Positions 2,336 through 62,665 of a stretch of 64,000 bases of DNA are shown in pieces. The DNA lies in contig NW_027266269.1 in assembly GCF_022045235.1 (NCBI RefSeq), positions 16,802,001 to 16,866,000 on the forward strand, written 5' to 3'. How positions within the stretch are numbered: position 1 is the first letter of the stretch; each line of letters begins with the position of its first letter. The notes beneath the pieces are model-generated. The model saw only the letters and a list, made by a program, of their open reading frames with translations. It was not told the DNA's origin and did no database searches. The position numbers were made by a program, and so were the translations under genes. Source of the DNA: Haliotis cracherodii (Eukaryota).

Positions 2336-2408
2336 TGGTCTGCGTAAGAAGCTTGAGGTGCAGCCGCCATCTCTTCCAGAACTGGAGATCACGCCAAAGA
2401 AGGAAAAG
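2336..2408 (+). CDS. RFX7: RFX5/RFX7-like transcription factor, internal exon (end of RFX DNA-binding domain plus PxLPxL motif)
   Basis: tacag|T GGT CTG CGT AAG AAG... translates (S)GLRKKLEVQPPSLPELEITPKKEK and ends AAG|gttt. It matches the RFX5/7 'YSGLRKK...PxLPxL' segment. Phase-0 end fits the next exon. Confidence 0.85.
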
Positions 2409-4143: not shown

Positions 4144-4348
4144 GAAGAAAAGACTGAGGAAGACGAGGTTTACACTGCTTCACGTCAGCTTGTGTGTGAA
4201 TGGGCACATAAGCTTTTGGGAACAAATTTCAACAATTTACGAGAATTGGCTGAGTTTCTGGTTGGGAATCTGTATGTCAACAGTAAATCAACTGCAGCAT
4301 TCACTGTGTTAGCTGCCATGCAAGATGCAGGACTTCATAATTCAAAAG
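4144..4348 (+). CDS. RFX7: RFX5/RFX7-like, internal exon
   Basis: tttttag|GAA... translates EEKTEEDEVYTASRQLVCEWAHKLLGTNFNNLRELAEFLVGNLYVNSKSTAAFTVLAA, similar to the RFX7 'ACRLVCEWAQKVL...LELARFLV...SMAALTV' helical region. Ends AAA G|gtaaaa (phase 1). Confidence 0.88.
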
Positions 4349-4425
4349 GTAAAATAGGTTCTCAACATGCCCAATAACAGCATTGCACCTGTTCCAGTAC
4401 CAATTTTTGTTAACATACGTTTTGG

Positions 4426-7200: not shown

Positions 7201-7389
7201 CCCTCTTGTTATTGTACAACCATGATCAAAGGGAAAATGCCACAAACGGGAAAGTTTTAAAATGTCTATAAAATAAGTTACTGTTTTTGTTTGCAGAAAC
7301 TGTGTTAACATGTATTTGATTAAAGAAATGTTTGACATCAATTTGCTTTGAGGTTTGCTTGCTATTTTTATGTTTTTTTTGTGTTGCAG

Positions 7390-10300: not shown

Positions 10301-12071
10301 AGGAACAAGTGATAATTTGACAAATAATGCCAGCAATACAAGTACAAATTCTGTGAGATCTGATTCAGCACAGAGCTTAGTTAATGAGTCAGTTGTTGTG
10401 CAAAGTCCCATACAACTGGCATCACCTCAAGTTCACAGTGCACGGTCCACACCTAGTTCTATTATGTCGCCACAAATGGCATCCCATAATAGTATCAACA
10501 CAAGCCCGAGTGAGAACATCACTTCTCCAAATTCTTTTATCCCAATTCAGGGTGGACTGACAACGGGCTGTTCAACACTGAGTAGTCCACAGCTGGTGAC
10601 TCCCATCAAACCCATGGTGACTGTAGCAGCTTCACCCAGTACAGTTTCATCAGTTACATTCAGTAGTAGTATTTTGATGCAGCTTACATCAAATAATAAT
10701 GGAGATCCCAAGTCCAGTCTCCTCTTCCATCACACACCCAATAACCAGCATAAGCAGAGGGACATGAAGTCATCTTCAAACACAACAGATGTCAAGGAGT
10801 CAAGTGCTAAAACTGGAGTTTTGCATAAACTACTCAATTCAAAGAGTTTGCCAAGCTATGAAGAGGCTGTACACCACTTGGGCAGGATCAACTTTGAGGA
10901 AAATGGCACAAGTGGTACCGCTGGGGTGACATCAGTTGCAAATCCTTGTTTAGAGACAGAAGCTCAAAAACAGGTTGTCAAAAGTGTCAATGTGAGTAAG
11001 CCTGTGAATGTTTCACTTACACGGTCAATTAGTGTTTCTGAAAATGATTTAAAGCTAAAACCAGATAACAGTCCCGACACCCAAGATAGAACTACTACAG
11101 GATCAGATGGAAGACACATCTCAACTAGTGAATACCCCTTCTCTTATCAACTTGCATTACTTAGAGAAAAGTGTCTAAATCCTCCTGGAAAGGAGAATAA
11201 AAGTGAACAAGGTAATAACAACAAAGGGCAATCCGTCCAGAGAATGTCTGCAGTGAACATAATGCCCTCAGAACTTAAAACCTTTTCAAATGGTAATAGT
11301 GCGCTTGCCAATGAATCAAAAGAGACCAAATTGCCTGATCCCCTGCAAGTAGATTCCACTGTTGAGGCAAATGATAACTTAATTCATGGTAAAGCTAATG
11401 TAACACACCATCATTATGGCACTGCTGCACAGAAACTTTCATCATTAAGCCAAAGCATGCCTGTGTCAAGTACAAATGCACGATTGAAAGCATCAACAAC
11501 TGTGATAAAACCATCTGCAAGTCCAGCATATCCGCGCACATTCTCTACAGATTTGGTGCCTTCTATTCCATCCAATGCATTGTTATCTACCAATAAACCT
11601 AGGCAGCTGGCACCAACAGCATTTGCTACTTTTGATTTACCAAACGTCAACTATATGGGCAATGCCCCTAATATTGACCTAGGGAGTATTCTGCAAGGCA
11701 AACAGGGAGCAGCTGGAGGTCTTCATACCGCCAGTGATAGTGCTGGCGGTGACCGAAGCAGACTTACCTTGATGCAGGCATTACAGCCCACTCAGACAAT
11801 AAATGAAGAGGAGCTGCAGTCAACATTAGAGATCCTTCGCAGTCTCGACAGTCAGTATTTCTCTCAGTCTGACCTAGACCTAGACACCATGCAGCCCTCT
11901 CTACAGCAATCACATCAATCTTCATCTCAGCATGAACTGCAGCTTCAGTCACAGGCCCTTTCTGTTAACCAAATAGACCAGGATGGTGCTGCAAACTCAA
12001 GTACTTCCTCTGATACTCAAGAACAAAAGAGTAGCATGAGGTCATTTACAAATAATGTGTCCAGCAGATAG
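7390..12071 (+). CDS. RFX7: RFX7-like giant terminal coding exon (coiled coil, then a long S/T/Q/N-rich disordered region)
   Basis: The 1579-aa ORF is entered through a strong acceptor ttttttttgtgttgcag|TT. Phase 1 matches the upstream exon (G+TT=Val). It begins with 'ETQLQLQRKLQERE' as in RFX7, has an NLS-like GRKRKS, and stops at TAG 12069-12071. Confidence 0.85.
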
Positions 12072-36175: not shown

Positions 36176-36274
36176 ATGAGTGGCACCACCAAGATAGAGT
36201 ACCGCTACATGGGACGTTCCGGGCTGAAGGTGTCCTGCGTGTGTCTGGGTACCATGATGTTCGGAGAGAGGCAG
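36176..36274 (+). CDS. Aldo-keto reductase (Tas/YajO-like) coding exon 1
   Basis: MSGTTKIEYRYMGRSGLKVSCVCLGTMMFGERQ, the typical AKR N-terminus (YRxLGxSGLKVSxxxLGTM). Donor CAG|gtaggg, phase 0. Confidence 0.92.
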
Positions 36275-36727
36275 GTAGGGCTGACTCCACAATCCTCATC
36301 TGTACGTCAGTTACTGTCCATATCACCTCACTTTCTTCTGTTTGACCTTTTCGAGCACATAAATAAAACCAATTGGGCTGTGGGTGATGTGACGTCCAAG
36401 GTTTTGAGTTGTTTCAAATGAATGTTGTAGGCAAACATTGTGTGTAAATTGTTAATTGCAAACAAAATGAACTTTGCCTGAATGTATAGAAACTACAACT
36501 TGGAATGTTGCAATTAGCAAGTCAGTATCTGAAACCGACTACCCCTGATCGCCTACCTGGTGGGCTGACAATGTCTGCTGCAAGATCCTACCCTGGCTAT
36601 GCAAGTTTAATCTCACCCAGCAAGCAGCACGTGCTGCATGCTAACTTAAACGCAATCCACGAAGCTGTTGTGTATTTTTTAATCAACCACTATCTATCGG
36701 AACATGACTCTTGTTCCCGGACGCTCC

Positions 36728-39700
36728 AGAACACCCCTACCCTGTGACTGTGTTGACAATATGTGTTGCAAAACCACTACCTGGGGTAGTGTGACTGTGT
36801 TGTCAATGTGCGTTGCAGAACCCCTACCCTGGCCAGTGTGACTGTGTTCATTGGTGTGTTGACAATGTGTGTTGCAGAACCCCTACCAAGGCCAGTGTGA
36901 CTGTTGACAGGTGTGTGGACAATGTGTGTTGCAGAACCCCTACCCTAGCCAGTGTCACTGTGTTGACAGGTGTGTTGCAGAACCCGTACCCGGGCCAGTG
37001 TCACAGTGTTGACAGGTGTGTTGCAGAACCCTTACCCTAGCCAGTGTCAACGTGTTGAGAGGTGTGTTGACAATGTGTGTTGCAGAACCCCTACCATTGC
37101 CACTGTGACTGTGTTCATTGGTGTGTTGACAATGTGTGTTGCAGAACCCCTACCCTTGCCAGTGTGACTGTGTTGTCAATGTGTGTTGGAGAACCCCTAC
37201 CCTAGCCAGTGCCACTGTGTTGACAGGTGTGTTGCAGAACCCCTACCCTAGCCAGTGTCAATGTGTTGACAGGTGTGTTGACAATGTGTGTTGAAGAACA
37301 CCTACCCTGACCAGTGTGACTATGTTGTCAATGTGTGTTGTCAATGTGTGTTGCAGAACCCCTACCCTGGCCAGTGTCACTGTGTTCATTGGTGTGTTGA
37401 CAATGTGTGTTGGAGAACCCCTACCCATGCCAGTGTGACTAAGTTGTCAATGTGTTGGAGAACTCCTAACCCTGGCCAGTGTCACTGTGTTTTCTGGTGT
37501 GTTGACAATGTGTGTTGCTGAACCTCTACCTTGGCAAGCGTGAATATGTTGTGTTGTGTGTTGACAATGTGTGTTGAAGAACCCCTTCCCTGGCCAGTGT
37601 GACTGTGTTGTCAATGTGTGTTGGAGAACCTCTAACCCTGGAGAGTGTGACTGTGTTGTCTGGTGTGTCGTGAACCCCCACCCTGGCCAGTGTGACTGGG
37701 TTATCAATGTGTGTTGCAGAACCCCTTCCCTGGCCAGTGTGACTGTGTTCATTGGTGTGTTGACAATTTGTGTTGCAGAACCTCTACCCTTGCCAGTGTG
37801 ACTGTGTTGTCAATGTGTGTTGTGAACCCCTAACCAGGCAAGTGTGACTGTTGACAGGTGTGTGGACAATGTGTGTGGCAGAACCCCTACCCGGGCCAGT
37901 GTGACTGTATCGTCAATGTGTTTTGCAGAACTACTCTCCTGGCCAGTGTGACTGTGTTGTCTGGTGTGTTGTGAACCCGTACCCGGGCCAGTATCACTGT
38001 CTTGACAAGTTATTGCAGATCCCCTACCCTAGTCAGTGTCACTGTGTTGACAGGTGTGTTGACAATGTGTGTTGCAGAACCCTTACCCTGGCCAGTGTAA
38101 CTATGTTGTCAATGAGTGTTCTCAATGTGTGTTGGAGAACCTCTAACCCTGGCCAGTGTGACTGTGTTGTCTGGTGTGTTGCAGAACCCCTACCCTAGCC
38201 AGTGCCAATGTGTTGACAGGTGTGTTGACAATGTGTGTTGCAGAACCCCTACCCTGGCCAGTGTGACTATGTTGACAATGTGTGTTGCAGAACCCCTACC
38301 CTGGCCAGTGTGACTGTGTTGTCTGGTGTGTTGACAATGTGTGTTGCAGAACCCCTTCCCAAGCCAGTGTCAATGTGTTGACAGGTGTGTTGACAATGTG
38401 TGTTGCAGAACCCCTACCCTGACCAGTGTGACTATGTTGTCAATGAGTGTTGACAATGTGTGTTGCAGAACCCCTACCCTGACACCCTGGTGTGTTGACA
38501 ATGTGTGTTGTCAATCAGTGTTAAAGAACCTCTAACCCTGGCCAGTGTGACTGTGTTGTCTGGTGTGCTGACAATGTGTGTTGCAGGACCCCTACCCGGA
38601 CAAGTGTGACTATGTTGTCAATGTGTATTGCAGAACCCCTATCCGGGCCAGTGTGACTGTGTCATCAATGTGTGTTGCAAAACTCCTCCTCTGGCCAATA
38701 TGACTGTGTTGTATGGTGTGTTGTGAACCCGTACCCGGGCCAGTGTCACTGTGTTGACAGGTTTTTGCAGATCCCCTACACTAGCCAGTGTCACTGTCTT
38801 GACAGGTGTGTTGCAGAGCCCGTACCCGAGCCAGTGTCACTGTGTTGTCTGGTGTGTTGCAGAACCCTTACCCTAGCCAGTGTCAATGTGTTGACAGGTG
38901 TGTTGACAATGTGTGTTGAAGAACACCTACCCTGGCAAGTGTGACTGTGTTTATTGGTGTGTTGACAATGTGCGTTGCAGAACTCCTACCCTTACCAGTG
39001 TGACTGTGTTGTCATTGTGTGTTGTCAGTGTGTGTTGCAGAACCCCTATCCTGACCAGTGTGACTATGTTGTCAATGTGTGTTGTCAATCAGTGTTGGAG
39101 AACCTCTAACCTTGGCCAGTGTGACTGTGTTGTCTGGTGTGTTGACAATATGTTTTGAAGAACCCCTACCTTGACCAGTGTGACTGTGTTGTCAGTGTGT
39201 GTTGCCAATGTGTGTTTGAGAACCCCTACCCTGACCAGTGTGACTGTGTTGTCTGGTGTGTTGTGAACCCCCACCCTGGCCAGTGTGACTGTGTTGTCAA
39301 TGTGTGTTGCAGAACCCCTTCCCTGGCCAGTGTGACTGTGTTGTCAATGTGTGTTGCAGAACCCCTTCCCTGGCCAGTGTGACTGTGTTGTCAATGTGTG
39401 TTGCAGAACTCCTAACCCTGACCAGTGTGACTGTGTTGTCAATGTGTGTTGCAGAACCCCTACCCTGACCAGTGTGACTGTGTTGTCTGGTGTGTTGTGG
39501 ACCCCCACCCTGGCCAGTGTGACTGTGTTGTCAATGTGTGTTGCAGAACCCCTTCCCTGGCCAGTGTGACTGTGTTGTCAATGTGTGTTGCAGAACCCCT
39601 TCCCTGGCCAGTGTGACTGTGTTGTCAATGTGTGTTGCAGAACTCCTAACCCTGACCAGTGTGACTGTGTTGTCAATGTGTGTTGCAGAACCCCTACCCT

Positions 39701-42700
39701 GACCAGTGTGACTGTGTTGTCTGGTGTGTTGTGGACCCCTACCCTGACCAGTGTGACTGTGTTGTCTGGTGTGTTGTGGACCCCCACCCTGGCCAGTGTG
39801 ACTGTGTTGTCTGGTGTGTTGCAGAACCCCTACCCTGACCAGTGTGACTGTGTTGTCTGGTGTGTTGTGGACCCCCACCCTGGCCAGTGTGACTGTGTTG
39901 TCTGGTGTGTTGTGGACCCCCACCCTGACCAGTGTGACTGTGTTGTCTGGTGTGTTGCAGAACCCCTACCCTGACCAGTGTGACTGTGTTGTCTGGTGTG
40001 TTGTGGACCCCCACCCTGGCCAGTGTGACTGTGTTGTCTGGTGTGTTGTGGACCCCCACCCTGGCCAGTGTGACTGTGTTGTCTGGTGTGTTGTGGACCC
40101 CCACCCTGACCAGTGTGACTGTGTTGTCTGGTGTGTTGTGGACCCCCAACCTGGCCAGTGTGACTGTATTGTCAATGTGTGTTTGAGAACCCCTTCCCTG
40201 GCCAGTGTGACTGTGTTGTCTGGTGTGTTGTGGACCCCCACCCTGGCCAGTGTGACTGTGTTGTCTGGTGTGTTGTGGACCCCCACCCTGGCCAGTGTGA
40301 CTGTGTTGTCTGGTGTGTTGCAGAACCCCTACCCTGACCAGTGTGACTGTGTTGTCTGGTGTGTTGTGGACCCCCACCCTGGCCAGTGTGACTGTGTTGT
40401 CTGGTGTGTTGTGGACCCCCACCCTGACCAGTGTGACTGTGTTGTCTGGTGTGTTGCAGAACCCCTACCCTGACCAGTGTGACTGTGTTGTCTGGTGTGT
40501 TGTGGACCCCCACCCTGGCCAGTGTGACTGTGTTGTCTGGTGTGTTGTGGACCCCCACCCTGACCAGTGTGACTGTGTTGTCTGGTGTGTTGCAGAACCC
40601 CTACCCTGACCAGTGTGACTGTGTTGTCTGGTGTGTTGTGGACCCCCACCCTGGCCAGTGTGACTGTGTTGTCTGGTGTGTTGTGGACCCCCACCCTGGC
40701 CAGTGTGACTGTGTTGTCTGGTGTGTTGTGGACCCCCACCCTGACCAGTGTGACTGTGTTGTCTGGTGTGTTGCAGAACCCCTACCCTGACCAGTGTGAC
40801 TGTGTTGTCTGGTGTGTTGTGGACCCCCACCCTGGCCAGTGTGACTGTGTTGTCAATGTGTGTTTGAGAACCCCTTCCCTGGCCAGTGTGACTGTGTTGT
40901 CTGGTGTGTTGTGGACCCCCACCCTGGCCAGTGTGACTGTGTTGTCTGGTGTGTTGTGGACCCCCACCCTGGCCAGTGTGACTGTGTTGTCTGGTGTGTT
41001 GCAGAACCCCTACCCTGACCAGTGTGACTGTGTTGTCTGGTGTGTTGTGGACCCCCACCCTGGCCAGTGTGACTGTGTTGTCTGGTGTGTTGTGGACCCC
41101 CACCCTGACCAGTGTGACTGTGTTGTCTGGTGTGTTGCAGAACCCCTACCCTGACCAGTGTGACTGTGTTGTCTGGTGTGTTGTGGACCCCCACCCTGGC
41201 CAGTGTGACTGTGTTGTCAATGTGTGTTTGAGAACCCCTTCCCTGGCCAGTGTGACTGTGTTGTCAATGTGTGTTGTGGACCCCCACCCTGACCAGTGTG
41301 ACTGTGTTGTCTGGTGTGTTGCAGAACCCCTACCCTGGCCAGTGTGACTGTGTTGTCTGGTGTGTTGTGGACCCCCACCCTGACCAGTGTGACTGTGTTG
41401 TCTGGTGTGTTGCAGAACCCCTACCCTGACCAGTGTGACTGTGTTGTCTGGTGTGTTGTGGACCCCCACCCTGGCCAGTGTGACTGTGTTGTCTGGTGTG
41501 TTGTGGACCCCCACCCTGACCAGTGTGACTGTGTTGTCTGGTGTGTTGCAGAACCCCTACCCTGACCAGTGTGACTGTGTTGTCTGGTGTGTTGTGGACC
41601 CCCACCCTGACCAGTGTGACTGTGTTGTCTGGTGTGTTGCAGAACCCCTACCCTGACCAGTGTGACTGTGTTGTCTGGTGTGTTGTGGACCCCCACCCTG
41701 GCCAGTGTGACTGTGTTGTCAATGTGTGTTTGAGAACCCCTTCCCTGGCCAGTGTGACTGTGTTGTCTGGTGTGTTGTGGACCCCCACCCTGGCCAGTGT
41801 GACTGTGTTGTCTGGTGTGTTGAAGAACTCCTAACCCTGACCAGTGTGACTGTCTTGCCTGGTATGTTGTCAATGTGTGTTGCAGAACCCCTTCCCTGGC
41901 CAGTGTGACTGTGTTGTCAATGTGTGTTGCAGAACTCCTAACCCTGACCAGTGTGACTGTGTTGTCAATGTGTGTTGGAGAACCCCTTCCCTGGCCAGTG
42001 TGACTGTGTTGACAGGTGTATTGACAATGTGTGTTACAGAACCCCTACCAAGGCCAGTGTGACTGTGTTGACATGTGTGGACAATGTGTGTTGCAGATCC
42101 CCTACCCTAGCCAGTGTCATTGTGTTGACAGGTGTGTTGCAGAACCCGTACCTGGGCCAGTGTCACAGTGTTGCCTGGTGTGTTGCAGAACCCCTACCCT
42201 AGCCAGTGTCAATGTGTTGAGAGGTGTGTTGACAATGTGTGTTGCAGAACCCCTACCCTGGCCAGTGTGACTGTGTTCATTGGTGTGTTGACAATGTGTG
42301 TTGCAGAACCCCTACCCTTGCCAGTGTGACTGTGTTGTCTGGTTTGTTGTGAACCCCTACCCTGGCCAGTGTGACTGTGTTGTCAATGTGTGTTGGAGAA
42401 CCCCTACCCTAGCCAGTGCCACTGTGTTGACAGGTGTGTTGCAGAACTCCTACCCTGGCCAGTGTCACTGTGTTCATTGGTTTGTTAACAATGTGTGTTG
42501 GAGAACCCCTACCCATGCCAGTGTGACTAAGTTGTCAATGTGTGTTGTCAATGTGTGTTGGAGAACTTCTAACCCTGGCCAGTGTGACTGTGTTGTCTGG
42601 TGTGTTGACACTGTGTGTTGCTGAACCTCTACCTTGGCAAGTGTGAATATGTTGTGTTGTGTGTTGACAATGTGTGTTGCAGAACCCCTACCCTGACCAG

Positions 42701-45237
42701 TGTGACTGTGCTGTCAATGTGTGTTGGAGAACCTCTAACCCTAACCAGTGTGACTGTGTTGACAATGTGTGTTGCAGAACCCCTACCCTGACCAGTGTGA
42801 CTATGTTGTCAATGTGTGTTCTCAATGTGTGTTGGAGAACACCTACCCTGGCCAGTGTGACTGTGCTGTCAATGTGTGTTGGAGAACCCCTTCCCTGGCC
42901 AGTGTGACTGTGTTGTCAATGTGTTTTGCAGAACCCCTTCCCTGGCCAGTGTGACTGTGTTGTCAATGTGTGTTGCAGAACCCCTCCCCTGGCCAGTGTG
43001 ACTGTGTTGTCAATGTGTGTTGCAGAACCCCTTCCCTGGCCAGTGTGACTGTGTTGTCAATGTGTGTTGCAGAACCCCTACCCTGGCCAGTGTGACTGTG
43101 TTGTCAATGTGTGTTGCAGAACCCCTTCCCTGGCCAGTGTGACTGTGTTGTCTGGTGTGTTGTGAACCCGTACCCTGGCCAGTGTGACTGTGTTGTCAAT
43201 GTGTGTTGCAGAACCCCTTCCCTGGCCAGTGTGACTGTGTTGTCAATGTGTGTTGCAGAACCCCTTCCCTGGCCAGTGTGACTGTGTTGTCAATGTGTGT
43301 TGCAGAACCCCTTCCCTGGCCAGTGTCACTGTGTTGTCTGGTGTGTTGTGAACCCGTACCCGAGCCAGTGTCACTGTGTTGACAGGTTATTGAAGAACCC
43401 CTACCCTAGCCAGTGCCAATGAGTTGACAGGTGTGTTGACAATGTGTGTTGCAGAACCCCTACCCTGGCCAGTGTGACTGTGTTGTCAATGTGTGTTGCA
43501 GAACCCCTATCCTAGCCAGTGTGACTGTGTTTATTGGTGTGTTGACAATGTGTGTTGCAGAACCCCTACCCTGACCAGTGTGACTATGTTGTCAATGTGT
43601 GTTCTCAATGTGTGTTGGAGAACACCTACCCTGGCCAGTGTGACTGTGCTGTCAATGTGTGTTGGAGAACCCCTTCCCTGGCCAGTGTGACTGTGTTGTC
43701 AATGTGTTTTGCAGAACCCCTTCCCTGGCCAGTGTGACTGTGTTGTCAATGTGTGTTGCAGAACCCCTCCCCTGGCCAGTGTGACTGTGTTGTCAATGTG
43801 TGTTGCAGAACCCCTTCCCTGGCCAGTGTGACTGTGTTGTCAATGTGTGTTGCAGAACCCCTACCCTGGCCAGTGTGACTGTGTTGTCAATGTGTGTTGC
43901 AGAACCCCTTCCCTGGCCAGTGTGACTGTGTTGTCTGGTGTGTTGTGAACCCGTACCCTGGCCAGTGTGACTGTGTTGTCAATGTGTGTTGCAGAACCCC
44001 TTCCCTGGCCAGTGTGACTGTGTTGTCAATGTGTGTTGCAGAACCCCTTCCCTGGCCAGTGTGACTGTGTTGTCAATGTGTGTTGCAGAACCCCTTCCCT
44101 GGCCAGTGTCACTGTGTTGTCTGGTGTGTTGTGAACCCGTACCCGAGCCAGTGTCACTGTGTTGACAGGTTATTGAAGAACCCCTACCCTAGCCAGTGCC
44201 AATGTGTTGACAGGTGTGTTGACAATGTGTGTTGCAGAACCCCTACCCTGGCCAGTGTGACTGTGTTGTCAATGTGTGTTGCAGAACCCCTATCCTAGCC
44301 AGTGTGACTGTGTTTATTGGTGTGTTGACAATGTGTGTTGCAGAACCCCTACCCTTACCAGTGTGACTGTGTTTATTGGTGTGTTGTCAGTGTGTGTTGC
44401 AGAACGCCTATCCTGACCAGTGTGACTATGTTGTCAATGTGTGTTGTCAGTCAGTGTTGGAGAACCTCTAACCCTGGCCAGTGTGACTGTGTTGTCTGGT
44501 GTGTTGACAATGTGTGTTGCAGAACCCCTACCTTGGCAAGTGTGACTGTGTTGTCTGGTGTGTTGACAATGTGTGTTGGATAGCCTCTAACCCTGGCCAG
44601 TGTGACTGTGTTGTCTGGTATGTAGACAATGTGTGTTGCAGAACCCCTACCCTGACCAGTGGTGACTGTGTTGTCTGGTGTGTTGTGAACCCCTACCCTG
44701 GCCAGTGTTACTGTGTTGTCAATGTGTGTTGGAGAACCCCTACCCGGGCCAGTGTGACTGTTGACAGGTGTGTTGACAATGTGTGTTGCAGAACCCCTAC
44801 CTAGGCCAGTGTGACTGTGTTGTCAATGTGTGTTGCAGAACCCCTTCCCTGGCCAGTTTGACTGTGTTGACAGGTGTGTTGCAGAACCCCTACTCTAGCC
44901 AGTGTCACTGTCTTGACAGCTGTGTTGCAGAATCCCTACCCTAGCCAGTGTCACTGTCTTGACAGCTGTGTTTGCAGAACCCCTACCCTAGCCAGTGTCA
45001 CTGTGTTGACAGGTGTGTTGGTAATGTATGTTGCAGAACCCCTACCCTAGCCAGTGTGACTATCTTGACAGGTGTGTTGACAATGTGTCTTTCAGAACCC
45101 CTACCCTAGCCAGTGTCACTGTGTTGACAGGTGTGTTGGTAATGTATGTTGCAGAACCCCTACCCTAGCCAGTGTGACTATCTTGACAGGTGTGTTGACA
45201 ATGTGTCTTTCAGAACCCATACCCGGGCCAGTGTGAC
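36728..45237 (+). repeat. 45-47-bp (some about 59-bp) minisatellite whose unit copies the acceptor site and the start of reductase coding exon 2
   Basis: Unit tgtgttgcag AACCCCTACCCTGGCCAGTGTGAC tgtgttgtcaatg versus the real junction tgtctttcag AACCCATACCCGGGCCAGTGTGAC gcc. Confidence 0.97.
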
Positions 45238-45356
45238 GCCGCCACCTCGCATGCTCTGCTCGACCGTTTCTTTGAACTAGGAGGCAACTTCATCGACACG
45301 GCCGACCTCTACTCTTTGGGTCAGTCGGAAGCCATCATAGGACAGTGGATGAACGG
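45214..45356 (+). CDS. Aldo-keto reductase coding exon 2
   Basis: tgtctttcag|[47 protein letters not shown](G)|gtgcgt. Contains the GxNFIDTAxxY motif with the catalytic Asp and Tyr. Confidence 0.92.
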
Positions 45357-48400: not shown

Positions 48401-48519
48401 CACCAACAGTTTCTGAAAGTTCTATTTACATCTGCGGAACCCATATTCACCCCACGCATCAAGTGCGACTATCCCAGTCTTCTCTTCTGAAGATCAGCGT
48501 ACCCGCAAAGTTTGGGGCA

Positions 48520-49165: not shown

Positions 49166-49304
49166 ACGCAGCCGAGACGATGTCGTGCTGGCGACAAAGG
49201 TGGGACTCCACTCCGATAGCCAGGGGTTGAGCCGACGATCCATCACACAGTCCGTGGAGAGAAGCCTTGGGAGATTACAGACACACTACATAGACCTGTA
49301 TCAG
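49166..49304 (+). CDS. Aldo-keto reductase coding exon 3
   Basis: ccttgcag|RSRDDVVLATKVGLHSDSQGLSRRSITQSVERSLGRLQTHYIDLYQ|gtactc. Catalytic Lys in ATK and the SLxRLxTxYIDLY motif; phases agree. Confidence 0.93.
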
Positions 49305-52300
49305 GTACTCCAATAACACAAATATAGGTCATTGACCGAGACCAGCAACACGTGCTAAGGCTGCCCTAATACATTGACCGCGACTAGCCCCACACGCTAA
49401 GAGTGCCCCATACCACAAACACAGGGCATTGACCGCGACTAGCCCCACACGCTAAGGGTACCCCATACCACAAACACAGGGTATAAACCGCGACTAGCCC
49501 CACACGCTAAGGTTACCCTATACCACAAACACAGGGCATTGACCGCGACTAGCCCCACACGCTAAGGGTACCCCATACCACAAAAACAGGGCATTGACCG
49601 CGACTAGCCCCACACGCTAAGGGTACCCCATACCACAAAAACAGGGCATTGACCACGACTAGCCCCACACGCTAAGGGTACCCCATACCACAAACACAGG
49701 GCATTGACCGCGACTAGCCCCACACGCTAAGGGTACCCCATACCACAAACACAGGGCATTGACCACGACTAGCCCCACACGCTAAAGGTACCCCATACCA
49801 CAAACACAGGGCACTGACCGCGACTAGCCCCACACGCTAAGGGTACCCCATACCACAAACACAGGGCAGTGATAGCGACTAGCCCCACACGCTAAAGGTA
49901 CCCCATACCACAAACACAGGGCATTTACCGCGACTAGCCCCACACGCTAAGGGTGCTCCCATACCACAAACACAGGGCAGTGATAGCGACTAGCCCCACA
50001 CACTAAAGTTACCCCATACCACAAACACAGGGCATTGACCGCGACTAGCCCCACACGCTAAGGGTGTCCTATACCACAAACACAGGGCAGTGATAGCGAC
50101 TAGCCCCACACGCTAAGGGTGTCCCATACCACAAACACAGGGCTTTGATAGCGACTAGCCCAACACGCTAAGGGTGCTCCAAACCACAAACACAGGGAAT
50201 TGACTATGACTAGCCCCAAAAGCTAAGGTGCTCCAATACCACAAACATAGGTCACTGACCAATATTAGCAGCATGCCCTAAGGTTGCTCCAATACCACAA
50301 ACATAGGTCACTGACCAATATTAGCAGCATGCCCTAAGGTTGCTCCAATACCACAAACATAGGTCACTGACCAATATTAGCAACATGCGCTAAGGTGCTC
50401 CAATACAGCAAACAGAGGTCACTGACCAATATTAGCAACATGTGCTAAGGTTGCTCCAATACCACAAACATAGGTCACTGACCAATATTAGCAACATGCG
50501 CTAAGGGTGCTCCAATACCACAAACATAGGTCATTGACCAATATTAGCAACATGCGCTAAGGTTGCTCCAATACCACAAACATAGGTCATTGACCAATAT
50601 TAGCAACATGCGCTAAGGGTGCTCCAATACCACAAACATAGGTCAATGACCAATATTAGCAGCATGCCCTAAGGTTGCTCCAATACCACAAACATAGGTC
50701 ATTGACCAATATTAGCAACATGCGCTAAGGTTGCTCCAATACCACAAACATAGGTCACTGACCAATATTAGCAGCATGCCCTAAGGTTGCTCCAATACCA
50801 CAAACATAGGTCACTGACCAATATTAGCAACATGCGCTAAGGGTGCTCCAATACCACAAACATAGGTCACTGACCAATATTAGAACATGCGCTAAGGTTG
50901 CTCCAATACCACAAACATAGGTCATTGACCAATATTAGCAACATGCGCTAAGGGTGCTCCAATACCACAAACATAGGTCATTGACCAATATTAGCAACAT
51001 GCGCTAAGGTGCTCCAATACCTCAAACATAGGTCATTGACCAATATTAGCAACATGCCCTAAGGTTGCTCCAATACCACAAACATAGGTCACTGACCAAT
51101 ATTAGCAGCATACCCTAAGGTTGCTCCAATACCACAAACATAGGTCATTGACCAATATTAGCAGCATGCCCTAAGGTTGCTCCAATACCACAAACATAGG
51201 TCACTGACCAATATTAGCAACATGCCCTAAGGGTGCTCCAATACCACAAACATAGGTCATTGACCAATATACGCAACATGCGCTAAGGGTGCTCCAATAC
51301 CACAAACATAGGTCACTGACCAATATTAGCAACATGCGCTAAGGTTGCTCCAATACCACAAACATAGGTCACTGACCAATATTAGCAACATGCGCTAAGG
51401 TTGCTCCAATACCACAAACATAGGTCACTGACCAATATTAGCAGCATGCCCTAAGGTTGCTCCAATACCACAAACATAGGTCATTGACCAATATTAGCAG
51501 CATGCCCTAAGGTTGCTCCAATACCACAAACATAGGTCACTGACCAATATTAGCTACATGCGCTAAGGTGCTCCAATACCACAAACATAGGTCACTGACC
51601 AATATTAGCAGCATGCCCTAAGGGTGCTCCAATACCACAAACATAGGCCACTGACCAATATTAGCAACATGCGCTAAGGTGCTCCAATACCACAAACATA
51701 GGTCACTGACCAATATTAGCAACATGCCCTAAGGTGCTCCAATACCACAAACATAGGTCACTGACCAATATTAGCAACATGCGCTAAGGGTGTTCCAATA
51801 CCACAAACATAGGTCACTGACCAATATTAGCAACATGCGCTAAGGGTGCTCCAGTACCACAAACATAGGTCACTGACCAATATTAGCAGCATGCGCTAAG
51901 GGTGCTCCAATACCACAAACATAGGTCATTGACCAATATTAGCAACATGCGCTAAGGGTGCTCCAATACCACAAACATAGGTCACTGACCAATATTAGCA
52001 ACACGCGCTAAGGGTGCTCCAATACCACAAACATAGGTCACTGACCAATATTAGCAACATGCGCTAAGGGTGCTCCAATACCACAAACATAGGTCACTGA
52101 CCAATATTAGCAGCATGCGCTAAGGGTGCTCTAATACCACAAACATAGGTCATTGACCAATATTAGCAACATGCGCTAAGGGTGCTCCAATACCACAAAC
52201 ATAGATCATTGACCAATATTAGCAACATGCGCTAAGGGTGCTCCAATACCACAAACATAGGTCACTGACCAATATTAGCAAAATGCTGAGGGTGCTCCAA

Positions 52301-53972
52301 TACCACAAACATAGGTCATTGACCAATATGAGCAACATGCGCTAAGGCTGCTCCAATACCACAAACATAGGTCATTGACCAATATTAGCAACATGCGCTA
52401 AGGGTGCTCCAATACCACAAACATAGGTCACTGACCAATATTAGCAGCATGCGCTAAGGGTGCTCCAATACCACAAACATAGGTCATTGACCAATATTAG
52501 CAACATGCGCTAAGGGTGCTCCAATACCACAAACATAGATCATTGACCAATATTAGCAACATGCGCTAAGGGTGCTCCAATACCGCAAACATAGGTCACT
52601 GACCAATATTAGCAAAATGCTGAGGGTGCTCCAATACCACAAACATAGGTCATTGACCAATATGAGCAACATGCTGAGGGTGCTCCAATACCACAAACAT
52701 AGGTCATTGACCAATATTAGCAACATGCTAAGGGTGCTCCAATACAGCAAACATAGGTCATTGACCAATATTAGCAACATGCGCTAAGGGTGCTCCAATA
52801 CCACAAACATAGGTCACTGACCAATATTAGCAACATGCGCTAAGGGTGCTCCAATACCACAAACATAGGTCATTGACCAATATTAGCAACATGCGCTAAG
52901 CGTGCTTCAATACCACAAACATAGGTCATTGAGCAATATTAGCAAAATGCTGAGGGTGCTCCAATACCACAAACATAGGTCATTGACCAATATGAGCAAC
53001 ATGCTGAGGGTGCTCCAATACCACAAACATAGGTCACTGACCAATATAAGCAACACGTGCTAAGGTTTATCCAATACCACAAACATAGATCATTGACCAA
53101 TATACGCAACATGCGCTAAGGGTGCTCCAATACCACAAACATAGGTCATTGACCAATATTAGCAACATGCGCTAAGGGTACTCCAATACCACAAACATAG
53201 ATCACTGACCAATATTAGCAACATGCGCTAAGGGTACTCCAATACCACAAACATAGATCATTGACCAATATTAGCAACATGCGCTAAGGGTGCTCCAATA
53301 CAGCAAACATAGCTTATTGACCAATATTAGCAGCATGCGCTAAGGGTGCTCCAATACCACAAACATAGGTCATTGACCAATATTAGCAACATGCGCTAAG
53401 GGTGCTCCAATACCACAAACATAGGTCACTGACCAATATTAGCAACATGCGCTAAGGGTGCTCCAATACCACAAACATAGGTCATTGACCAATATTAGCA
53501 ACATGCGCTAAGGGTGTTCCAATACCACAAACATAGATCATTGACCAATATTAGCAACATGCGCTAAGGGTGTTCCAATACCACAAACATAGCTTATTGA
53601 CCAATATTAGCAACATGCGCTAAGGGTGTTCCAATACCACAAACATAGCTTATTGACCAATATTAGCAACATGCGCTAAGGGTGTTCCAATACCACAAAC
53701 ATAGCTTATTGACCAATATTAGCAACATGCGCTAAGGGTGTTCCAATACCACAAACATAGCTTATTGACCAATATTAGCAACATGCGCTAAGGGTGTTCC
53801 AATACCACAAACATAGCTTATTGACCAATATTAGCAACATGCGCTAAGGGTGTTCCAATACCGCAAACATAGCTTATTGACCAACATGCGCTGTGGGTGC
53901 TCCACACAACAAACATAGGTTATTGACCGAGACCAGCAACATGCACTAAGAGTGCTCCAATACCACAAACAT
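49305..53972. repeat. 55-56-bp minisatellite starting at the exon 3 donor; two subtypes
   Basis: Subtype A cattgaccgcgactagccccacacgctaagggtaccccataccacaaacacaggg to about 50220; subtype B ggtgctccaataccacaaacataggtcactgaccaatattagcaacatgcgctaag after that. Confidence 0.97.
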
Positions 53973-54009
53973 CGCCCCATCATCAAAATAGACCGACGTT
54001 CCAGAGCAT

Positions 54010-54201: not shown

Positions 54202-54375
54202 ACACACTTCTGGGACAAGGGGACTCCTGCTGAGGAGACTGTGCGGACGTTTGACGACCTCGTCCGGTGCGGTAAGATCCGGTACGGCGGCAACAGCAAC
54301 CTGTGTGGCTGGATGGTGCAGAAGATGGCAGACATCACAGACCGACTTGGGCTCAACCCCTTCATCAGCCTACAG
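54202..54375 (+). CDS. Aldo-keto reductase coding exon 4
   Basis: tatcag|THFWDKGTPAEETVRTFDDLVRCGKIRYGGNSNLCGWMVQKMADITDRLGLNPFISLQ|gtgagc. Catalytic His and GKIRYxGxSN motif. Confidence 0.93.
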
Positions 54376-55105: not shown

Positions 55106-56164
55106 CTTGACCACAGATCGACATGTGGTAACTGTGTCTGTGTGTGGTAACTGTGCCTGTGTGGTATATGTGTCTGTGTGTGATAACTGTATCTGTGTGT
55201 GGTAACTGTGTCTGTATGCGGTATATGTGTCTGTGTGTGATAACTGTGTCTGTGTGTGGTAACTGTCTGTGTGGTATATGTGTCTGTGTGTGATAACTGT
55301 GTCTGTGTGTGGTAACTGTGTCTGTGTGTGATAACTGTGTCTATGTGTGGTAACTGTGTCTGTGTGTTGTATGTGTGTCTGTGTGTGGTATAAGTGTCTG
55401 TGTGTGATAACTGTCTGTGTGTGTGGTAACTGTGTCTGTCTGTGTGTGATAACTGTGTCTGTGTGTGGTATATGTGTCTGTGTGTGGTAACTATGTCTGT
55501 GTGTGATAACTGTCTGTGTGTGATAACTCTGTGTTTGTGTGATAACTGTCTGTGTGTGATAACTGTGTCTTTGTGTGGTAACTGTGTCTGTATGTGTCTT
55601 TGTGTGGCAACTGTCTGTGTGGTATATGTGTCTGTGTGTGATAACTGTGTCTGTGTGTAGTAACTGTGTCTGTGTGTCATAATTGTGTCTGTGTGTGGTA
55701 ACTGTGTCTGTGTGTTGTATGTGTGTCTGTGTGTGGTATATGTGTCTGTGTGTGATAACTGTGTCTGTGTGTGATAACTGTGTCTGTGTGTGATACTTGT
55801 CCTCAGATCTACATGTGGTAACTGTGGCTGTGTGTCATAATTGTGTCTGTGTGTGGTAACTGTGTCTGTGTGTTGTATGTGTGTCTGTGTGTGGTATATG
55901 TGTCTGTGTGTGATAACTGTGTTTGTGTGTGATAACTGTGTCTGTGTGTGATACTTGTCCTCAGATCTACATGTGGTAACTGTGGCTGTGTGTCATAATT
56001 GTGTCTGTGTGTGGTAACTGTGTCTGTGTGTTGTATGTGTGTCTGTGTGTGGTATATGTGTCTGTGTTTGATAACTGTGTCGGTGTTATAACTGTGTCTG
56101 TGTGTGATACTTGTCCTCAGATCTACATGTGGTAACTGTGTCTGTGTGTGGTATGTGTCCACAG
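55106..56164. repeat. TG-rich 18-20-bp minisatellite ending at the exon 5 acceptor
   Basis: (tgtgtggtaactgtgtctg / tgtgtgataactgtgtctg)n with a 156-158-bp higher-order unit. Confidence 0.95.
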
Positions 56165-56262
56165 CAACGCTACAGCCTTGGTACCCGTGATTCGGAGTGG
56201 GATGCCTTCGCTGTGTGTAATCAGGTCGGCATGGGTGTGATGGCTTGGGGGACACTGATGAG
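56165..56262 (+). CDS. Aldo-keto reductase coding exon 5
   Basis: tgtccacag|QRYSLGTRDSEWDAFAVCNQVGMGVMAWGTLM(S)|gtgaga, matching QxxYSLxxRxxE...GxGxxxW. Confidence 0.9.
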
Positions 56263-56591: not shown

Positions 56592-56779
56592 CGGCCTGCT
56601 CACGGGGAAGTACAAGCGCGGGGACCCGCAGGTCAACAGTAGTCAGGGGACCCGCCTGGCCTGGCTGGCGGAGGACGAGTCCAGGTGTCAGCGGATCTTC
56701 CCCTCTTGGACCAAGCTGCAGGCAGACACACGACTGTGGAACACACTCGACGTTCTCACGCATGTCGCCAACACCCACA
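56592..56779 (+). CDS. Aldo-keto reductase coding exon 6
   Basis: tgacag|(S)GLLTGKYKRGDPQVNSSQGTRLAW...LDVLTHVANTH|gtaggt. GLLTGKY motif; phases agree. Confidence 0.9.
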
Positions 56780-57558
56780 GTAGGTACCACGCTCACACAG
56801 CTTGCCCAACCCGACTGTGTACAGTGTACACGGGCTGACAGGTCTGCCTGGTGTACATAGATTAACAAAATCGGATCAAAACTTAACGGCTGGAACAAAA
56901 TTTAGCTCCATATGAATGCGATCACGATGCCTATTGCTGGTTAAAAGCGATTAAATTGAATTGAAGGCTGAATCTGTTTCTGGAAGTTATGTTTTGGCCA
57001 TTCAACATATTCTCGTAAGTAGGTATACGTTAAGTTAAAGATTGTAGTTTTCAAAGTCATCGTAAACCATGTGGGTATAACTTTTCTAACTGACCCCTTT
57101 ACAGAAATGACATTTCAGTTTACAGACACGCGTGTTTCACGATCGAGCGCTTGGAAGTCTTTTTCAGTCGTTCAGTCGACATTAATCATTTTTCTGAACA
57201 GATATGTTTCAGTTGTGAAAACGTATAGAAATACACCTTGTAATACCGAAATGCAGGGGTCAGCTACAGTGTTAGGTTTGTCGGTAGCCTTTTGCTCAAG
57301 TGTTTTGTTTGAATACGATGGTTTTATTTCCTTCGGTGTGCGGATAGATTCCTGTCGACCGATTTATGCAATTCAATGAAATCATGAGTTGCAGCAGTGA
57401 CTACTTCATCCCTGTAAACGAGGGTTTAACAGTGGACGCCAAGATTGTTATATCTCTGGTATACCAAATAACCATGCACTGCCACACTGCAGATATGCCA
57501 GTCGTGGGAGCCCGCACCTCTTGCAACCGCCTGCTCAACATCTCCAAATGTCTTTCAG

Positions 57559-57698
57559 ATAGGAGTGTATCCCAAGTTGCACAGAAGTGGGTCCTGCAGA
57601 AAAACGTAGCATCAATAATTATCGGCAGCAGGGACATCCCACAACTCGAGGCCAACATGGCGGCTGGCCACAGGGACTGGGAACTCTCCCCACAGGAG
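57559..57698 (+). CDS. Aldo-keto reductase coding exon 7 (final exon lies beyond the window)
   Basis: tctttcag|(N)RSVSQVAQKWVLQKNVASIIIGSRDIPQLEANMAAGHRDWELSPQE|gtagga, the C-terminal NADP-binding segment. No stop codon is reached. Confidence 0.9.
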
Positions 57699-57699: not shown

Positions 57700-60600
57700 T
57701 AGGACACCAACAACGTTTAACATTAGGACACCTCAGACAACATTTAACATTAGGACACCTCAGACAACATTTAACATTAGGACATCACCGACAACGTTTA
57801 ACATTAGGACATCACCGACAACGTTTAACATTAGGACATCACCGGCAACGTTTAACATTAGGACACCGCCGACAACGTTTAACTTTAGGACACCTCAGAC
57901 ATGTTTCATTAACACACCTCTGACAATGTGATTCATTAGGACATCCCCAACAATGTTTAACACTAGGACACCACCGACAACATTTAACAGAAGGACACCT
58001 CCGACAACGTGTTTTATTAAGACACCTCTGACTGTGTGTTCCATAAGGACACCTCCAACAACGTTTACAATAGGACACCTCTGATAATATGTTTCATTAT
58101 AGACTATTATGACACCTCTGACAATGTTTAACATTAGGACACCTCCGACAGCGTGTTTCATAAGGACACCTCCAACAACGTTTAACATTAGGACACCTAC
58201 GACAGCGTGTTTCATTAAGACACCTACGACAGCGTGTTTCATTAGAACAACTCTGACAACGTGTTGCATTAGGACACCACCGACAATGTGTTTAATCAGG
58301 ACACCTCTGACACCGTGTTTCATCAGAACACATCAGACAGCGTTTCTCATTAGAACACCTACGACAATGTATTCATTAGGACACCTCTGACATCGTTTAG
58401 CATTAAGACACCTCCGACAACGTGTTTCATGAGGAAACCTCAAACAGCGTGTTTCATTAGGACACCTCCGACAACGTGTTTCATTAGGTCACCTCCGACT
58501 GCGTGTTTCATTAGGACATTTCCAACTGTGGGTTTCATTAGGACACCTCCGACATTGTGTTTCATGGGGACACCTCCGACAACGTGTTTCATTAGGAAAC
58601 CTCCGACAACATGTTTCACTAGGACACCTCCGATTGCGTGTTTCATTAGGACACCTCCGACGTGTTTCATTAGGACAACTCCGGCTGTGGGTTTCATTAG
58701 GACAACTCTGACAACGTGTTGGTACATCTCGACAGCGTGTTTCATTAGGACACCTCCGACAGCGTGTCTCATTAGGACACCACTGACAACGTTTAACATT
58801 AGGACACCTCTGACAGTATGATTCACTAGGACACCTCCGACAGTGTGTTTCATGAGGAAACCCCCGACAACATGTTTCACTACGACATCTCCGACTCTGT
58901 GTTACATTAGGACACCTCTGACAATGTGTTTCATTAGGACACCTCAAACAGTGTTTCTCATTAGAACACCTACGACAATGTATTCATTAGGACACCTCTG
59001 ACATCGTTTAGCATTAAGACACCTCCGACAACGTGTTTCATTAGGAAACCTCCGACTGCGTGTTTCATTAGGACATTTCCAACTGTGGGTTTCATTAGGA
59101 CACCTCCGACATTGTGTTTCATGGGGACACCTCCGACAACGTGTTTCATTAGGAAACCTCCGACAACATGTTTCACTAGGACACCTCCGATTGCGTGTTT
59201 CATTAGGACACCTCCGACGTGTTTCATTAGGACAACTCCGGCTGTGGGTTTCATTAGGACAACTCTGACAACGTGTTGGTACATCTCGACAGCGTGTTTC
59301 ATTAGGACACCTCCGACAGCGTGTCTCATTAGGACACCACTGACAACGTTTAACATTAGGACACCTCTGACAGTATGATTCACTAGGACACCTCCGACAG
59401 TGTGTTTCATGAGGAAACCCCCGACAACATGTTTCACTACGACATCTCCGACTCTGTGTTACATTAGGACACCTCTGACAATGTGTTTCATTAGGACACC
59501 TCAAACAGCGTGTTTCATTAGGACACTACCAAATGTGGGTTTCATTAGGACACCTCCGACATTGTGTTTCTTGAGGACACCTCAAACAGCGTGTTTCATT
59601 AGGTAACCTCCGACAACATGTTTCACTAGGACACCTCCGGTTGCGTGTTTCACTAGGACACCTCCAACAACGTGTTTCATCAGAACACATCAGACAGCGT
59701 TTCTCATTAGAACACCTACGACAATGTATTCATTAGGACACCTCTGACATCGTTTAGCATTAAGACACCTCCGACAACGTGTTTCATGAGGAAACCTCAA
59801 ACAGCGTGTTTCATTAGGACACCTCCGACAACGTGTTTCATTAGGTCACCTCCGACTGCGTGTTTCATTAGGACATTTCCAACTGTGGGTTTCATTAGGA
59901 CACCTCCGACATTGTGTTTCATGGGGACACCTCCGACAACGTGTTTCATTAGGAAACCTCCGACAACATGTTTCACTAGGACACCTCCGATTGCGTGTTT
60001 CATTAGGACACCTCCGACGTGTTTCATTAGGACAACTCCGGCTGTGGGTTTCATTAGGACAACTCTGACAACGTGTTGCATTAGGACACCACCGACAATG
60101 TGTTTAATCAGGACACCTCTGACACCGTGTTTCATCAGAACACATCAGACAGCGTTTCTCATTAGAACACCTACGACAATGTATTCATTAGGACACCTCT
60201 GACATCGTTTAGCATTAAGACACCTCCGACAACGTGTTTCATGAGGAAACCTCAAACAGCGTGTTTCATTAGGACACCTCCGACAACGTGTTTCATTAGG
60301 TCACCTCCGACTGCGTGTTTCATTAGGACATTTCCAACTGTGGGTTTCATTAGGACACCTCCGACATTGTGTTTCATGGGGACACCTCCGACAACGTGTT
60401 TCATTAGGAAACCTCCGACAACATGTTTCACTAGGACACCTCCGATTGCGTGTTTCATTAGGACACCTCCGACGTGTTTCATTAGGACAACTCCGACTGT
60501 GGGTTTCATTAGGACACCTTAGACATTGTGTTTTGTGAGGACACCTCAAACAGCGTGTTTCATGAGGACACCTCCGACATTGTGTTTCATGAGAACACCT

Positions 60601-62665
60601 CAAACAGCGTGTTTCATTAGGAAATCTACGACAACATGTTTCACTAGGACACCTCCGATCGCGTGTTTCATGAGGACACCTCAAACAGCGTATTTCATGA
60701 GGACACATCCGACAACATGTTTCACTAGGACACCTCCGATTGCAGGTCTCCTTAGAGCACCTCCGACAGCGTGTTCCATTAGGACACCTCCGACTGCGTG
60801 TTTCATTAGGGCACCTCCGACAATGTGTTTCATTATGACACCTCCGACAACATGTTTCACTGTGACATCTCCGATTGCGTGTCTCCTTAGAGCACCTCTG
60901 ACAGCGTGTTTCATTAGGACACCTCCGACTGTGTGTTTCATTGGAACACCTCCGACAATGTGTTTCATTATGACACCTCCGACAACGTGTTTCATGAGGA
61001 CACCTCCGACTATGTGTTTCATTAGGACACCTCAAACAGCGTGTCTCTTTAGGACACTTCCGACAGCGTGTTTCATTAGGACACTTCCAACTGTGGGTTT
61101 CATTAGGACACCTCCGACATTGTGTTTCATGAGGACATCTCAAACAGCTCGTTTCATAAGAAAACCTCCGACAACATGTTTCACTAGGACACCCCCGATT
61201 GCGTGTTTCCTTAGAGCACCTCCGACAGCGTGTTTCATTAGGACACCTCCTACAATGTGTTTTATTAGGACACCTCCGACAGCATGTTTCATTAGGACAC
61301 CTCCGACAGCTTGTTTCATTGGTACATCTCGACAGCGTGTTTCATTAGGACACCTCCGACAGCGTGTCTCATTAGGACACCACTGACAACGTTTAACATT
61401 AGGACACCTCTGACAGTATGATTCACTAGGACACCTCCGACAGTGTGTTTCATGAGGAAACCCCCGACAACATGTTTCACTACGACATCTCCGACTCTGT
61501 GTTACATTAGGACACCTCTGACAATGTGTTTCATTAGGACACCTCAAACAGCGTGTTTCATTAGGACACTACCAAATGTGGGTTTCATTAGGACACCTCC
61601 GACATTGTGTTTCTTGAGGACACCTCAAACAGCGTGTTTCATTAGGTAACCTCCGACAACATGTTTCACTAGGACACCTCCGGTTGCGTGTTTCACTAGG
61701 ACACCTCCAACAACGTGTTTCATCAGAACACATCAGACAGCGTTTCTCATTAGAACACCTACGACAATGTATTCATTAGGACACCTCAAAAAGCGTGTGT
61801 CATTAGGACACTTCCAACTGTGGGTTTCATTAGGACACCTCCGACAATGTGTTTCATGGGGACACCTCAAACATTGTGTTTCATTAGAAAACCTCTGACA
61901 ACATGTTTCACTAGTACACCTCCGATTGCGTGTATCCTTTGAGCACCTCCGACAGTGTGTTTCATTAGGATACCTCCGACAATGCGTTTCCTTAGGACAC
62001 CTCCGACAGCGTGTCTCATTAGGACTCCTCGGACAATGCGTTTCATGAGGACACCTCCGACAGCTTGTTTCATTGGGACATCTCGACTGCTTGTTTCATT
62101 AGGACACCTCCGACAACAAGTTTCGTTAGGACACCTCCAACAGAGTGTCTCATTAGGACACCTCAAGCAGCGTGTTTCATTAGGAAACTTCCAACTGTGG
62201 GTTTCTTTAGGACACCTCCGACATTGTGTTTCATGAGGACACCTCTAAAAGGGTGTTTCATTAGGACACCTCTGACAACGTGTTTCATTAGGACACCTCC
62301 GACATTGTGTTTCATTAGGACACCTCAAACAGCGTGTTTCATGAGGACACCTCAAACAGCGTGTTTCATGAGGACACCTCCGACAACATGTTTCATTAGG
62401 ACACTTCCCATTGCGGGTCTCCTTAGAGCACCTCCGTCAGCGTGTTTCATGAGGACACCTCCGACAATGTGTTTCATTAGGACACCACCGACAACATGTT
62501 TCACTAGGACACCTCCGACAATGTGTTTCATTATGACACCTCCGACAGTGTGTTTCATGAGGACACCTCCGACAATGTGTTTCATTAGGACACCTCCGAC
62601 AGCATGTCTCATTAGGACACCACTGACAACGTTAAACATTAGGACACCACCGACAATGTGATTTA
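57700..62665. repeat. 27-bp minisatellite starting at the exon 7 donor
   Basis: (ttaggacacctccgacaacgtgtttca)n with several 450-560-bp block duplications. Confidence 0.97.

Follow-up and report, generated by a model that had tools for sequence, protein, structure and literature searches.

A boundary-derived minisatellite of some 170 units in intron 1 of a black abalone aldo-keto reductase gene

Tandem repeats lying over intron/exon boundaries were named 'mirages' when they were described in the lancelet Adh3 gene, and have also been found in lancelet globin, troponin C and PGBD5 genes, at both 5' and 3' boundaries, where they leave splicing undisturbed and undergo the turnover typical of minisatellites (PMC3087553, PMC3902484). 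In intron 7 of the human F7 gene, a 37-bp minisatellite has its first unit over the exon 7 donor, and the pseudo-sites that it contains are functional yet silent (PMC1557585). An ordinary intronic minisatellite is on record for Pacific abalone (PMC6905558), and no report of boundary-spanning arrays in molluscs was found in the literature searched. Here we describe an array of this kind in the black abalone, Haliotis cracherodii, where the boundary between intron 1 and exon 2 of a YajO-like aldo-keto reductase gene is repeated through 8.5 kb of the intron. The window analysed is a stretch of 64,000 nucleotides (assembly GCF_022045235.1, contig NW_027266269.1, positions 16,802,001 to 16,866,000 of the forward strand), and coordinates without a chromosome label are positions within it.

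As in the lancelet mirages (globins BflGb6 and BflGb9 among others), the abalone unit spans a boundary and carries both a splice signal and exon sequence, the authentic site lies in an edge copy, splicing is normal, and turnover appears to proceed by unequal exchange with edge units escaping homogenisation. Head-to-tail units of tens of bp, the presence of splice signal and host exon sequence within them, an ancestral exon and use of the edge copy are all found in the abalone array, and a recent change in array length is suggested by an internal duplication in the one assembled haplotype (783 bp, 99.9% identical). Unlike the lancelet globin mirages, with their 3-6 units, the abalone array has ~170 units over 8.5 kb; its host is a gastropod mollusc and not a cephalochordate, and the tract of its authentic acceptor has become stronger by divergence. 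The variable number tandem repeat of human F7 is likewise a junction-seeded minisatellite with identical silent pseudo-sites, from which the exon-adjoining copy is chosen. However, the F7 repeat is a donor-side array of few copies, whereas the focal abalone array sits on the acceptor side and its last copy is chosen after all of the decoys have been transcribed. A donor-spanning first element of the F7 type is absent from the focal array but present in the arrays at 49305 and 57700 of the same gene, which resemble it more closely. The gain of an intron through duplication of an AG/GT exon segment (Rogers model, PMC3087553; potato, PMC4974935) is also a tandem duplication with splice signals, but the abalone intron predates the array and no new intron or exon has been made; this origin was ruled out since the intron is common to paralogues on other chromosomes and is older than the array.

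Anatomy and origin of the array

Tandem Repeats Finder reports a composite tandem array at 36749-45237 with periods of 45-47 and 59-60 and higher-order periods of 91, 136 and 181. Each unit measures 45-47 or 59-60 bp and consists of the 3' splice region of intron 1 followed by the first 24 nt of exon 2. A fuzzy search of the whole window with this 24-nt exonic core, allowing up to 6 substitutions, returned 169 copies between 36772 and 45214, all on the + strand, and no copy in the window outside that span. Of these, 168 are decoys and the last is the real start of exon 2, whose first 24 nt (45214-45237) form the final unit of the array; one further degenerate unit is concealed in a core spacing of 119 nt. 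Core-to-core spacings of 47 (n=44), 45 (n=43), 59 (n=34) and 46 (n=27) were counted, the 59-nt form being the 46/47-nt form with one additional copy of a 12-13-nt sub-repeat. The real junction matches the unit consensus at 22/24 exonic nucleotides, and both mismatches (positions 6 and 12) fall at third codon positions. An AG stands immediately 5' of the core in 109 of the 168 decoys, is displaced by 1 nt in 12, and is TG in 44. Within the most homogenised block (Table 1), two thirds of the units read GTG followed by GACCCCCACCC, without the AG, and AG-bearing units number 6/22 and 9/22 in the bins covering 39.7-41.7 kb against 13-17 of 18-20 elsewhere. This AG-poor youngest block fits selection against decoys, and fits drift equally well.

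A preliminary description, made from the letters of the window alone, had proposed an 8.5 kb satellite built from the 3' splice site and eight codons, a 22/24 exonic match with differences at third positions only, and a functional exon that is simply the last unit of the array. All three points agree with the repeat finding and the core search, the last of the 169 cores lying at 45214. Its estimate of 170-180 units was slightly high against the ~170 counted (169 cores and the hidden unit), and its statement that most units keep an intact AG corresponds to 65% of decoys. The start that it gave for the array, 36728, is not the original limit, as a decayed unit (Table 1) places an old outer edge further upstream.

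The host gene was delineated by tblastn with the full-length homologue P0026, which placed seven exons. Domain and structure searches were made exon by exon, singly; exon 2 alone matches Pfam PF00248 above the cut-off (E 3.6e-10, 39.8 bits, cut-off 24) and aryl-alcohol-dehydrogenase-like structures (PDB 7utf, E 8e-13). The terminal exon of the gene was not found within 20 kb past the window.

The direction of origin is indicated by the distribution of the unit and by the conservation of the exon. All 34 matches to the array unit in the 1.18 Gb Haliotis cracherodii genome lie within C6:16838749-16847237, with none elsewhere in a word search that skipped very common words. Six paralogous copies of exon 2 are present on other chromosomes with PGQ[CA][DT] at the same exon start, four of them reading AEFPGQCD, AKLPGQAT, AKRPGQAT and GSRPGQAT straight after the AG, and [RFT]PGQ[CSA]D occupies the equivalent place in homologues from lancelet, bivalve, freshwater snail, octopus and flatworm. 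The paralogues are also interrupted by an intron at this codon, which lies three codons ahead of PGQ, in a common position and phase. Since PGQ and the intron position are both kept in the paralogues, both are older than the array. Comparison of these sequences supports, as the preliminary description had suggested, amplification of an exon junction into an array, and not capture of a satellite by the exon; the alignment of paralogues and homologues places PGQxD before the array, and the unit is unique to the locus. The decoy cores evolve free of coding constraint, with 235 non-synonymous and 37 synonymous codon changes, no excess at third positions and stops in three units. The real exon 2 has two differences only from the array consensus, both at synonymous third positions.

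Growth of the array seems to have been recent and to have occurred by multi-unit duplication, judging by the 783-bp duplication and the 136-bp higher-order repeat. The 783-bp block at 42778-43560 is directly repeated at 99.9% identity, and other segments of the array recur at 85-88% identity. In the proposed course of events, a segment of ~46 bp over the boundary, made up of ~22 nt of intron tail, which holds the AG and a branch-point-like TTGAC, and of the 24 nt that open exon 2, would have been duplicated in tandem. The unit starts with TGTGTTGAC and ends with AGTGTGAC, a short imperfect direct repeat, and the first duplication probably arose by slippage between these similar ends. Unequal exchange and multi-unit duplication would then have expanded the array to ~170 units, the copies being non-coding passengers that presumably evolve neutrally, while the last copy, alone contiguous with the remainder of exon 2, would alone be used.

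Transcript evidence and choice of the acceptor

Transcript data were taken as assembled Logan contigs from public runs, a form in which rare isoforms are hidden and which comes without read counts or strand. Contigs were aligned to 43500-49400; exon 1 lies 8.9 kb from exon 2, so its link to exon 2 is given by the letters of loose contig ends and not by a mapped joint. In the RNA-like runs X1 and X2, which belong to one study, a contig covers 45211-45357 with 0 differences and then jumps to 49167-49304. At positions 6 and 12 these contigs read A and G, the letters of the real exon 2 and not those of a decoy. One contig carries 113 extra nt in front, and the final 30 of these correspond to the close of exon 1 as far as its last CAG; this closing CAG is absorbed into the alignment, which begins at 45211 and not at 45214, because the acceptor likewise ends in CAG. 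The canonical GT..AG reading of the joint between exons 2 and 3 (45357 to 49167) sets its ends at 45356/45357 and 49165/49166, and the loose end behind 49304 is the start of exon 4. In the DNA-like runs X15 and X16 the exon joint is absent from the contigs. The gene is transcribed, and is spliced from 36274 to 45214, from 45356 to 49166 and from 49304 to 54202. With the letters of exon 1 fused to 45214, the last copy of the array is the acceptor in use. The transcription of the gene, on which the preliminary description had made the splicing problem depend, and its splicing past all decoys are supported by the X1 and X2 contigs.

Acceptor quality was expressed as simple measures of the tract, the ~40 inferred acceptors being too few for a weight matrix. 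The real exon 2 acceptor carries TCTTTCAG, and its pyrimidine run before the AG is 6 nt long against 0-1 nt in the decoys, the decoy at 45096 excepted. Among all 169 cores, TGTCTTTCAG precedes two only, those at 45214 and 45096. Use of decoy 45096 would add 118 nt and lead to a stop after 46 codons, and each of the last six decoys, if used, leads to a stop codon within 46 codons. The array contains 21 copies of CAG/GTGTGT that lie 35 nt past a decoy AG, delimiting 'exons' of 35 nt separated by gaps of 10-24 nt. An AG/GT arrangement of this sort is also what defines a recursive splice site, where a 3' splice site adjoins a 5' one and the pair is used stepwise.

Very short exons and very small gaps are poor substrates for splicing, and transcripts with early stops are degraded. 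The real acceptor is probably favoured by the unbroken TCTTTC before its AG, where decoys have G at -4 and -7. It alone precedes the true exon sequence and a true donor 143 nt downstream, an arrangement that exon definition would favour. The decoy 'exons' and the gaps between units may be too short for the spliceosome to assemble, and RNAs spliced to the last decoys would, with their early stop, be expected to go to nonsense-mediated decay.

Cryptic exons repressed by TDP-43 are flanked by UG repeats, and classic TDP-43 sites have UG runs much longer than those in the array. The likeness to the abalone locus consists in GU-rich sequence beside unused splice sites and is a resemblance only: the runs in the array are (TG)3 (n=97), with one (TG)4 and none longer, and the long UG repeat beside a cryptic site is thus a feature that the array lacks. 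Repression of the decoys by TDP-43, in the form in which the preliminary description put it forward, is not supported by these counts and is at most a lead. Two loci in the genome match the TDP-43 N-domain PF18694 above the cut-off. One of them (G000:C6:16986477-16986698, - strand) lies ~120 kb downstream of the window, probably by coincidence.

Other arrays in the gene, its paralogues and the surroundings

The boundary array had been treated as a one-off, a view that does not hold, since arrays of the same type, which form a described class, recur in this gene and in its paralogues. The 56-bp array behind exon 3 contains 34 donor-like copies of GGGTGCTCC, and the 19-bp array stops so close to exon 5 that it forms the tract ahead of that exon's acceptor (Table 1). 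At the paralogue loci (G000:C56:55507001-55567000 and G000:C7:28876001-28916000), a 25-bp array with 50 copies of GTGAGTAC starts at an exon 3 donor, arrays with units of 30-39 bp in three tandem genes contain the last ~20 nt of exon 4 and the donor GTAGGACA, and arrays with units of 55-66 bp in three genes on two chromosomes contain the last ~50 nt of exon 7 and GTGAGTCTG. In 40 introns, from seven reductase genes, 23 array blocks were counted, of which 7 adjoin or overlap a junction; with random placement the expected number is 2.3 (P 0.0005).

For the donor-anchored arrays, an origin from lariats or rolling circles was considered and rejected; the unit ends are branch-point-like, but the unit junctions do not join a branch A to G+1, and the exon sequence inside the focal array also counts against such an origin.

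Within the reductase gene, the exon 7 acceptor (57550-57559) and the real exon 2 acceptor (45204-45213) are preceded by an identical ten-base intron end (TGTCTTTCAG), from which the array consensus differs. Intron 2 contains a LINE-like reverse-transcriptase fragment (45549-48120), in which the open reading frames at 46487-46723 and 47905-48120 look retroelement-derived by eye. In the RNA-like run X2, a 1.8 kb contig extends over 45549-47368; its depth is near that of the mRNA contig, probably because the element is multi-copy.

Upstream, three large arrays between 24859 and 35921 (48 bp x 50, 10/30 bp x 147 and 18 bp x 167) take up the greater part of the 11 kb that precedes the reductase gene, and the last of them ends 255 nt before its ATG. 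The last exon of the RFX-domain gene near the start of the window (7389-12068) is 100% identical to an annotated Haliotis cracherodii protein. The 2.7 kb intronic array of this RFX-domain gene (47-bp units, 4447-7201) starts ~100 nt past a donor and ends ~190 nt before an acceptor, and is therefore not anchored to a junction. In all, minisatellite makes up ~36 kb of the 84 kb examined (the window and 20 kb downstream). A remnant resembling a Tc1/mariner-type transposase, with overlapping broken frames, lies at 15720-16350 (- strand), and 144 N at 19731-19874 mark a gap or a masked stretch.

Repeats were also seen in predicted proteins from homologous genes. The homologue P0001 has the intron tail and the head of exon 2 repeated twice, the Octopus vulgaris model P0083 has a 7-residue repeat straight after ...VDLYQ (the position of the exon 3 donor), and the C-terminal end of the Bulinus model P0011 is a translated tandem repeat. 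From their sequence, these repeats may be intronic arrays read as coding.

Table 1. Positions of the array, the exons of its host gene and neighbouring features in the window
Feature	Coordinates	Strand	Evidence
RFX-domain gene (PF02257, PF18326), annotated 'serine-rich adhesin for platelets-like'	2325..12068	+	
Exon 1, 33 codons, ends ...FGERQ; donor GT 36275-36276	36176..36274	+	Translation, tblastn with P0026, transcript-contig loose end
Decayed unit copy, old outer edge	36566..36597	+	Local alignment score 35 vs shuffle maximum 22
Intronic part of the array, 168 decoys: branch-point-like TTGAC, GU-rich tract, (C)AG, 24 nt of exon 2	36728..45213	+	
Most homogenised block, 91/136-bp higher-order repeat, 91% matches	39210..41870	+	
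Two tandem 783-bp multi-unit blocks, 99.9% identical	42778..44343	+	
Strongest decoy; 22 nt upstream as at the real acceptor (TGTCTTTCAG); core start 45096	45074..45119	+	
Exon 2, ends ...QWMNG; aldo/keto reductase domain	45214..45356	+	Pfam, PDB, transcript contigs
Exon 3	49166..49304	+	Contig joint in X1 and X2, canonical GT..AG ends
56-bp array, ~82 units, from exon 3 donor; units retain donor-like GGTGCTCC	49305..53972	+	Unit-to-flank alignment starts 49304
Exon 4	54202..54375	+	tblastn; contig loose end past 49304 is its first 30 nt
19-bp array, ends 5 nt short of exon 5	55124..56159	+	
Exon 5	56165..56262	+	tblastn, sequence
Exon 6	56592..56783	+	tblastn, sequence
Exon 7	57560..57698	+	tblastn, sequence
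27-bp array, ~180 units, from +2 of exon 7 donor; units TTAGGACACC vs donor GTAGGACACC	57700..62655	+	

Competing explanations and significance

The array is best read as a mirage-type minisatellite, in which a boundary segment has been amplified in tandem within intron 1, the decoys are passive and only the last copy is used. We assign this reading a probability of roughly 0.8; the anatomy of the array, the direction of its origin, the lack of constraint on the decoys, the recent growth and the use of 45214 in mRNA are all observed at this locus, and the array most likely has no function. Several observations weigh against it. Decoy 45096 has 22 nt upstream identical to those at 45214, and the choice must therefore depend on more than the strength of the tract; the better pyrimidine tract invoked in the preliminary description does exist at the real site, as a 6-nt run, but is not the sole explanation. 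Assembled contigs lose rare isoforms, and decoys may yet be used rarely, or their use be concealed by decay. The RNA-like runs differ from the window at 5/138 nt of exon 3, so that their source may be a different individual or even a sister species, and they also contain short array contigs of low depth that could be pre-mRNA, DNA carry-over or products of decoy use. Junction arrays in this gene family are also in excess, if less so, under a null in which introns were ancestrally short and a unit-sized duplication could fall at any point of the little intron sequence that is not array: the 7/23 junction arrays then compare with 3.6 expected (P 0.03), about twofold.

That excess, modest under the fairer null, would accommodate a process biased towards junctions, or selection. 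Breaks coupled to transcription or splicing, or RNA-templated repair, might direct duplication to junctions, and in addition to the enrichment under either null, four more arrays start at exon 7 donors. However, the enrichment is modest given how small the non-array parts of the introns are, the arrays of the three tandem paralogues may share a single origin, the 2.7 kb array of the RFX-like gene is unanchored, and ascertainment may contribute because arrays at junctions are easier to notice; a junction-targeted process is judged unlikely. It is a little less probable still that the array is functional, with weak acceptors and GU-rich sites that bind TDP-43-like or CELF-like repressors, or U2AF, and so tune the speed of splicing, unproductive splicing or expression. 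The 109 AG-bearing decoys and 97 (TG)3 runs, the homologues of the TDP-43 N-domain, the AG depletion of the youngest and most amplified block, which could mean selection on decoy strength, and the two tract-improving changes at the authentic site are all compatible with such a role. Binding by repressors is nonetheless conjectural, the UG runs are far shorter than those generally known from classic TDP-43 sites, and the decoy cores drift freely. The same kind of array at other junctions in this genome and in lancelets suggests a mutational by-product (PMC3087553).

Two further explanations have very little probability. If the exon had captured a pre-existing satellite, its first eight codons would be repeat-derived, and for residues 34-36 (NPY), which lie in a variable linker, conversion from array to exon is indeed conceivable. 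PGQCD, however, is kept by paralogues and by homologues of other phyla, the paralogues have their intron in the same position and the unit is found at this locus only, and capture was rejected on account of the single locus and the conserved PGQCD start. An assembly duplication could account for the two 783-bp blocks, given their identity of 99.9%, and the array could in principle have been wrongly expanded or misplaced. Such an artefact is equally improbable in view of the contigs from independent runs (X15, X16), which connect exon 2 with the final units of the array and also match units in other parts of it, of the diversity of the units and their ordered higher-order structure, and of the same architecture at other loci.

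The mirage-type reading makes the locus a large new example and not a new principle. It extends boundary-derived minisatellites beyond lancelets to a mollusc, and hence to a new phylum, at an unusual scale and with recurrence in one gene family. It also provides a natural experiment in 3' splice-site choice, in which ~110 AG decoys are transcribed first and the assembled mRNA uses the real site. A bolder proposal, which we consider unlikely although not negligible, is that junction-biased duplication in abalone makes mirages a main driver of intron growth, and that the arrays are silenced by a dedicated mechanism, for example GU-binding repressors or strict exon definition; if it were true, the locus would offer a natural test of how one acceptor, the last of ~110, comes to be chosen. 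The repeats in P0083 and P0011 suggest that such arrays may mislead gene prediction. They may also distort the calling of repeats and variants in what is a critically endangered species. Arrays of this kind inflate introns, and are a sign of how introns grow in the genome of the black abalone.

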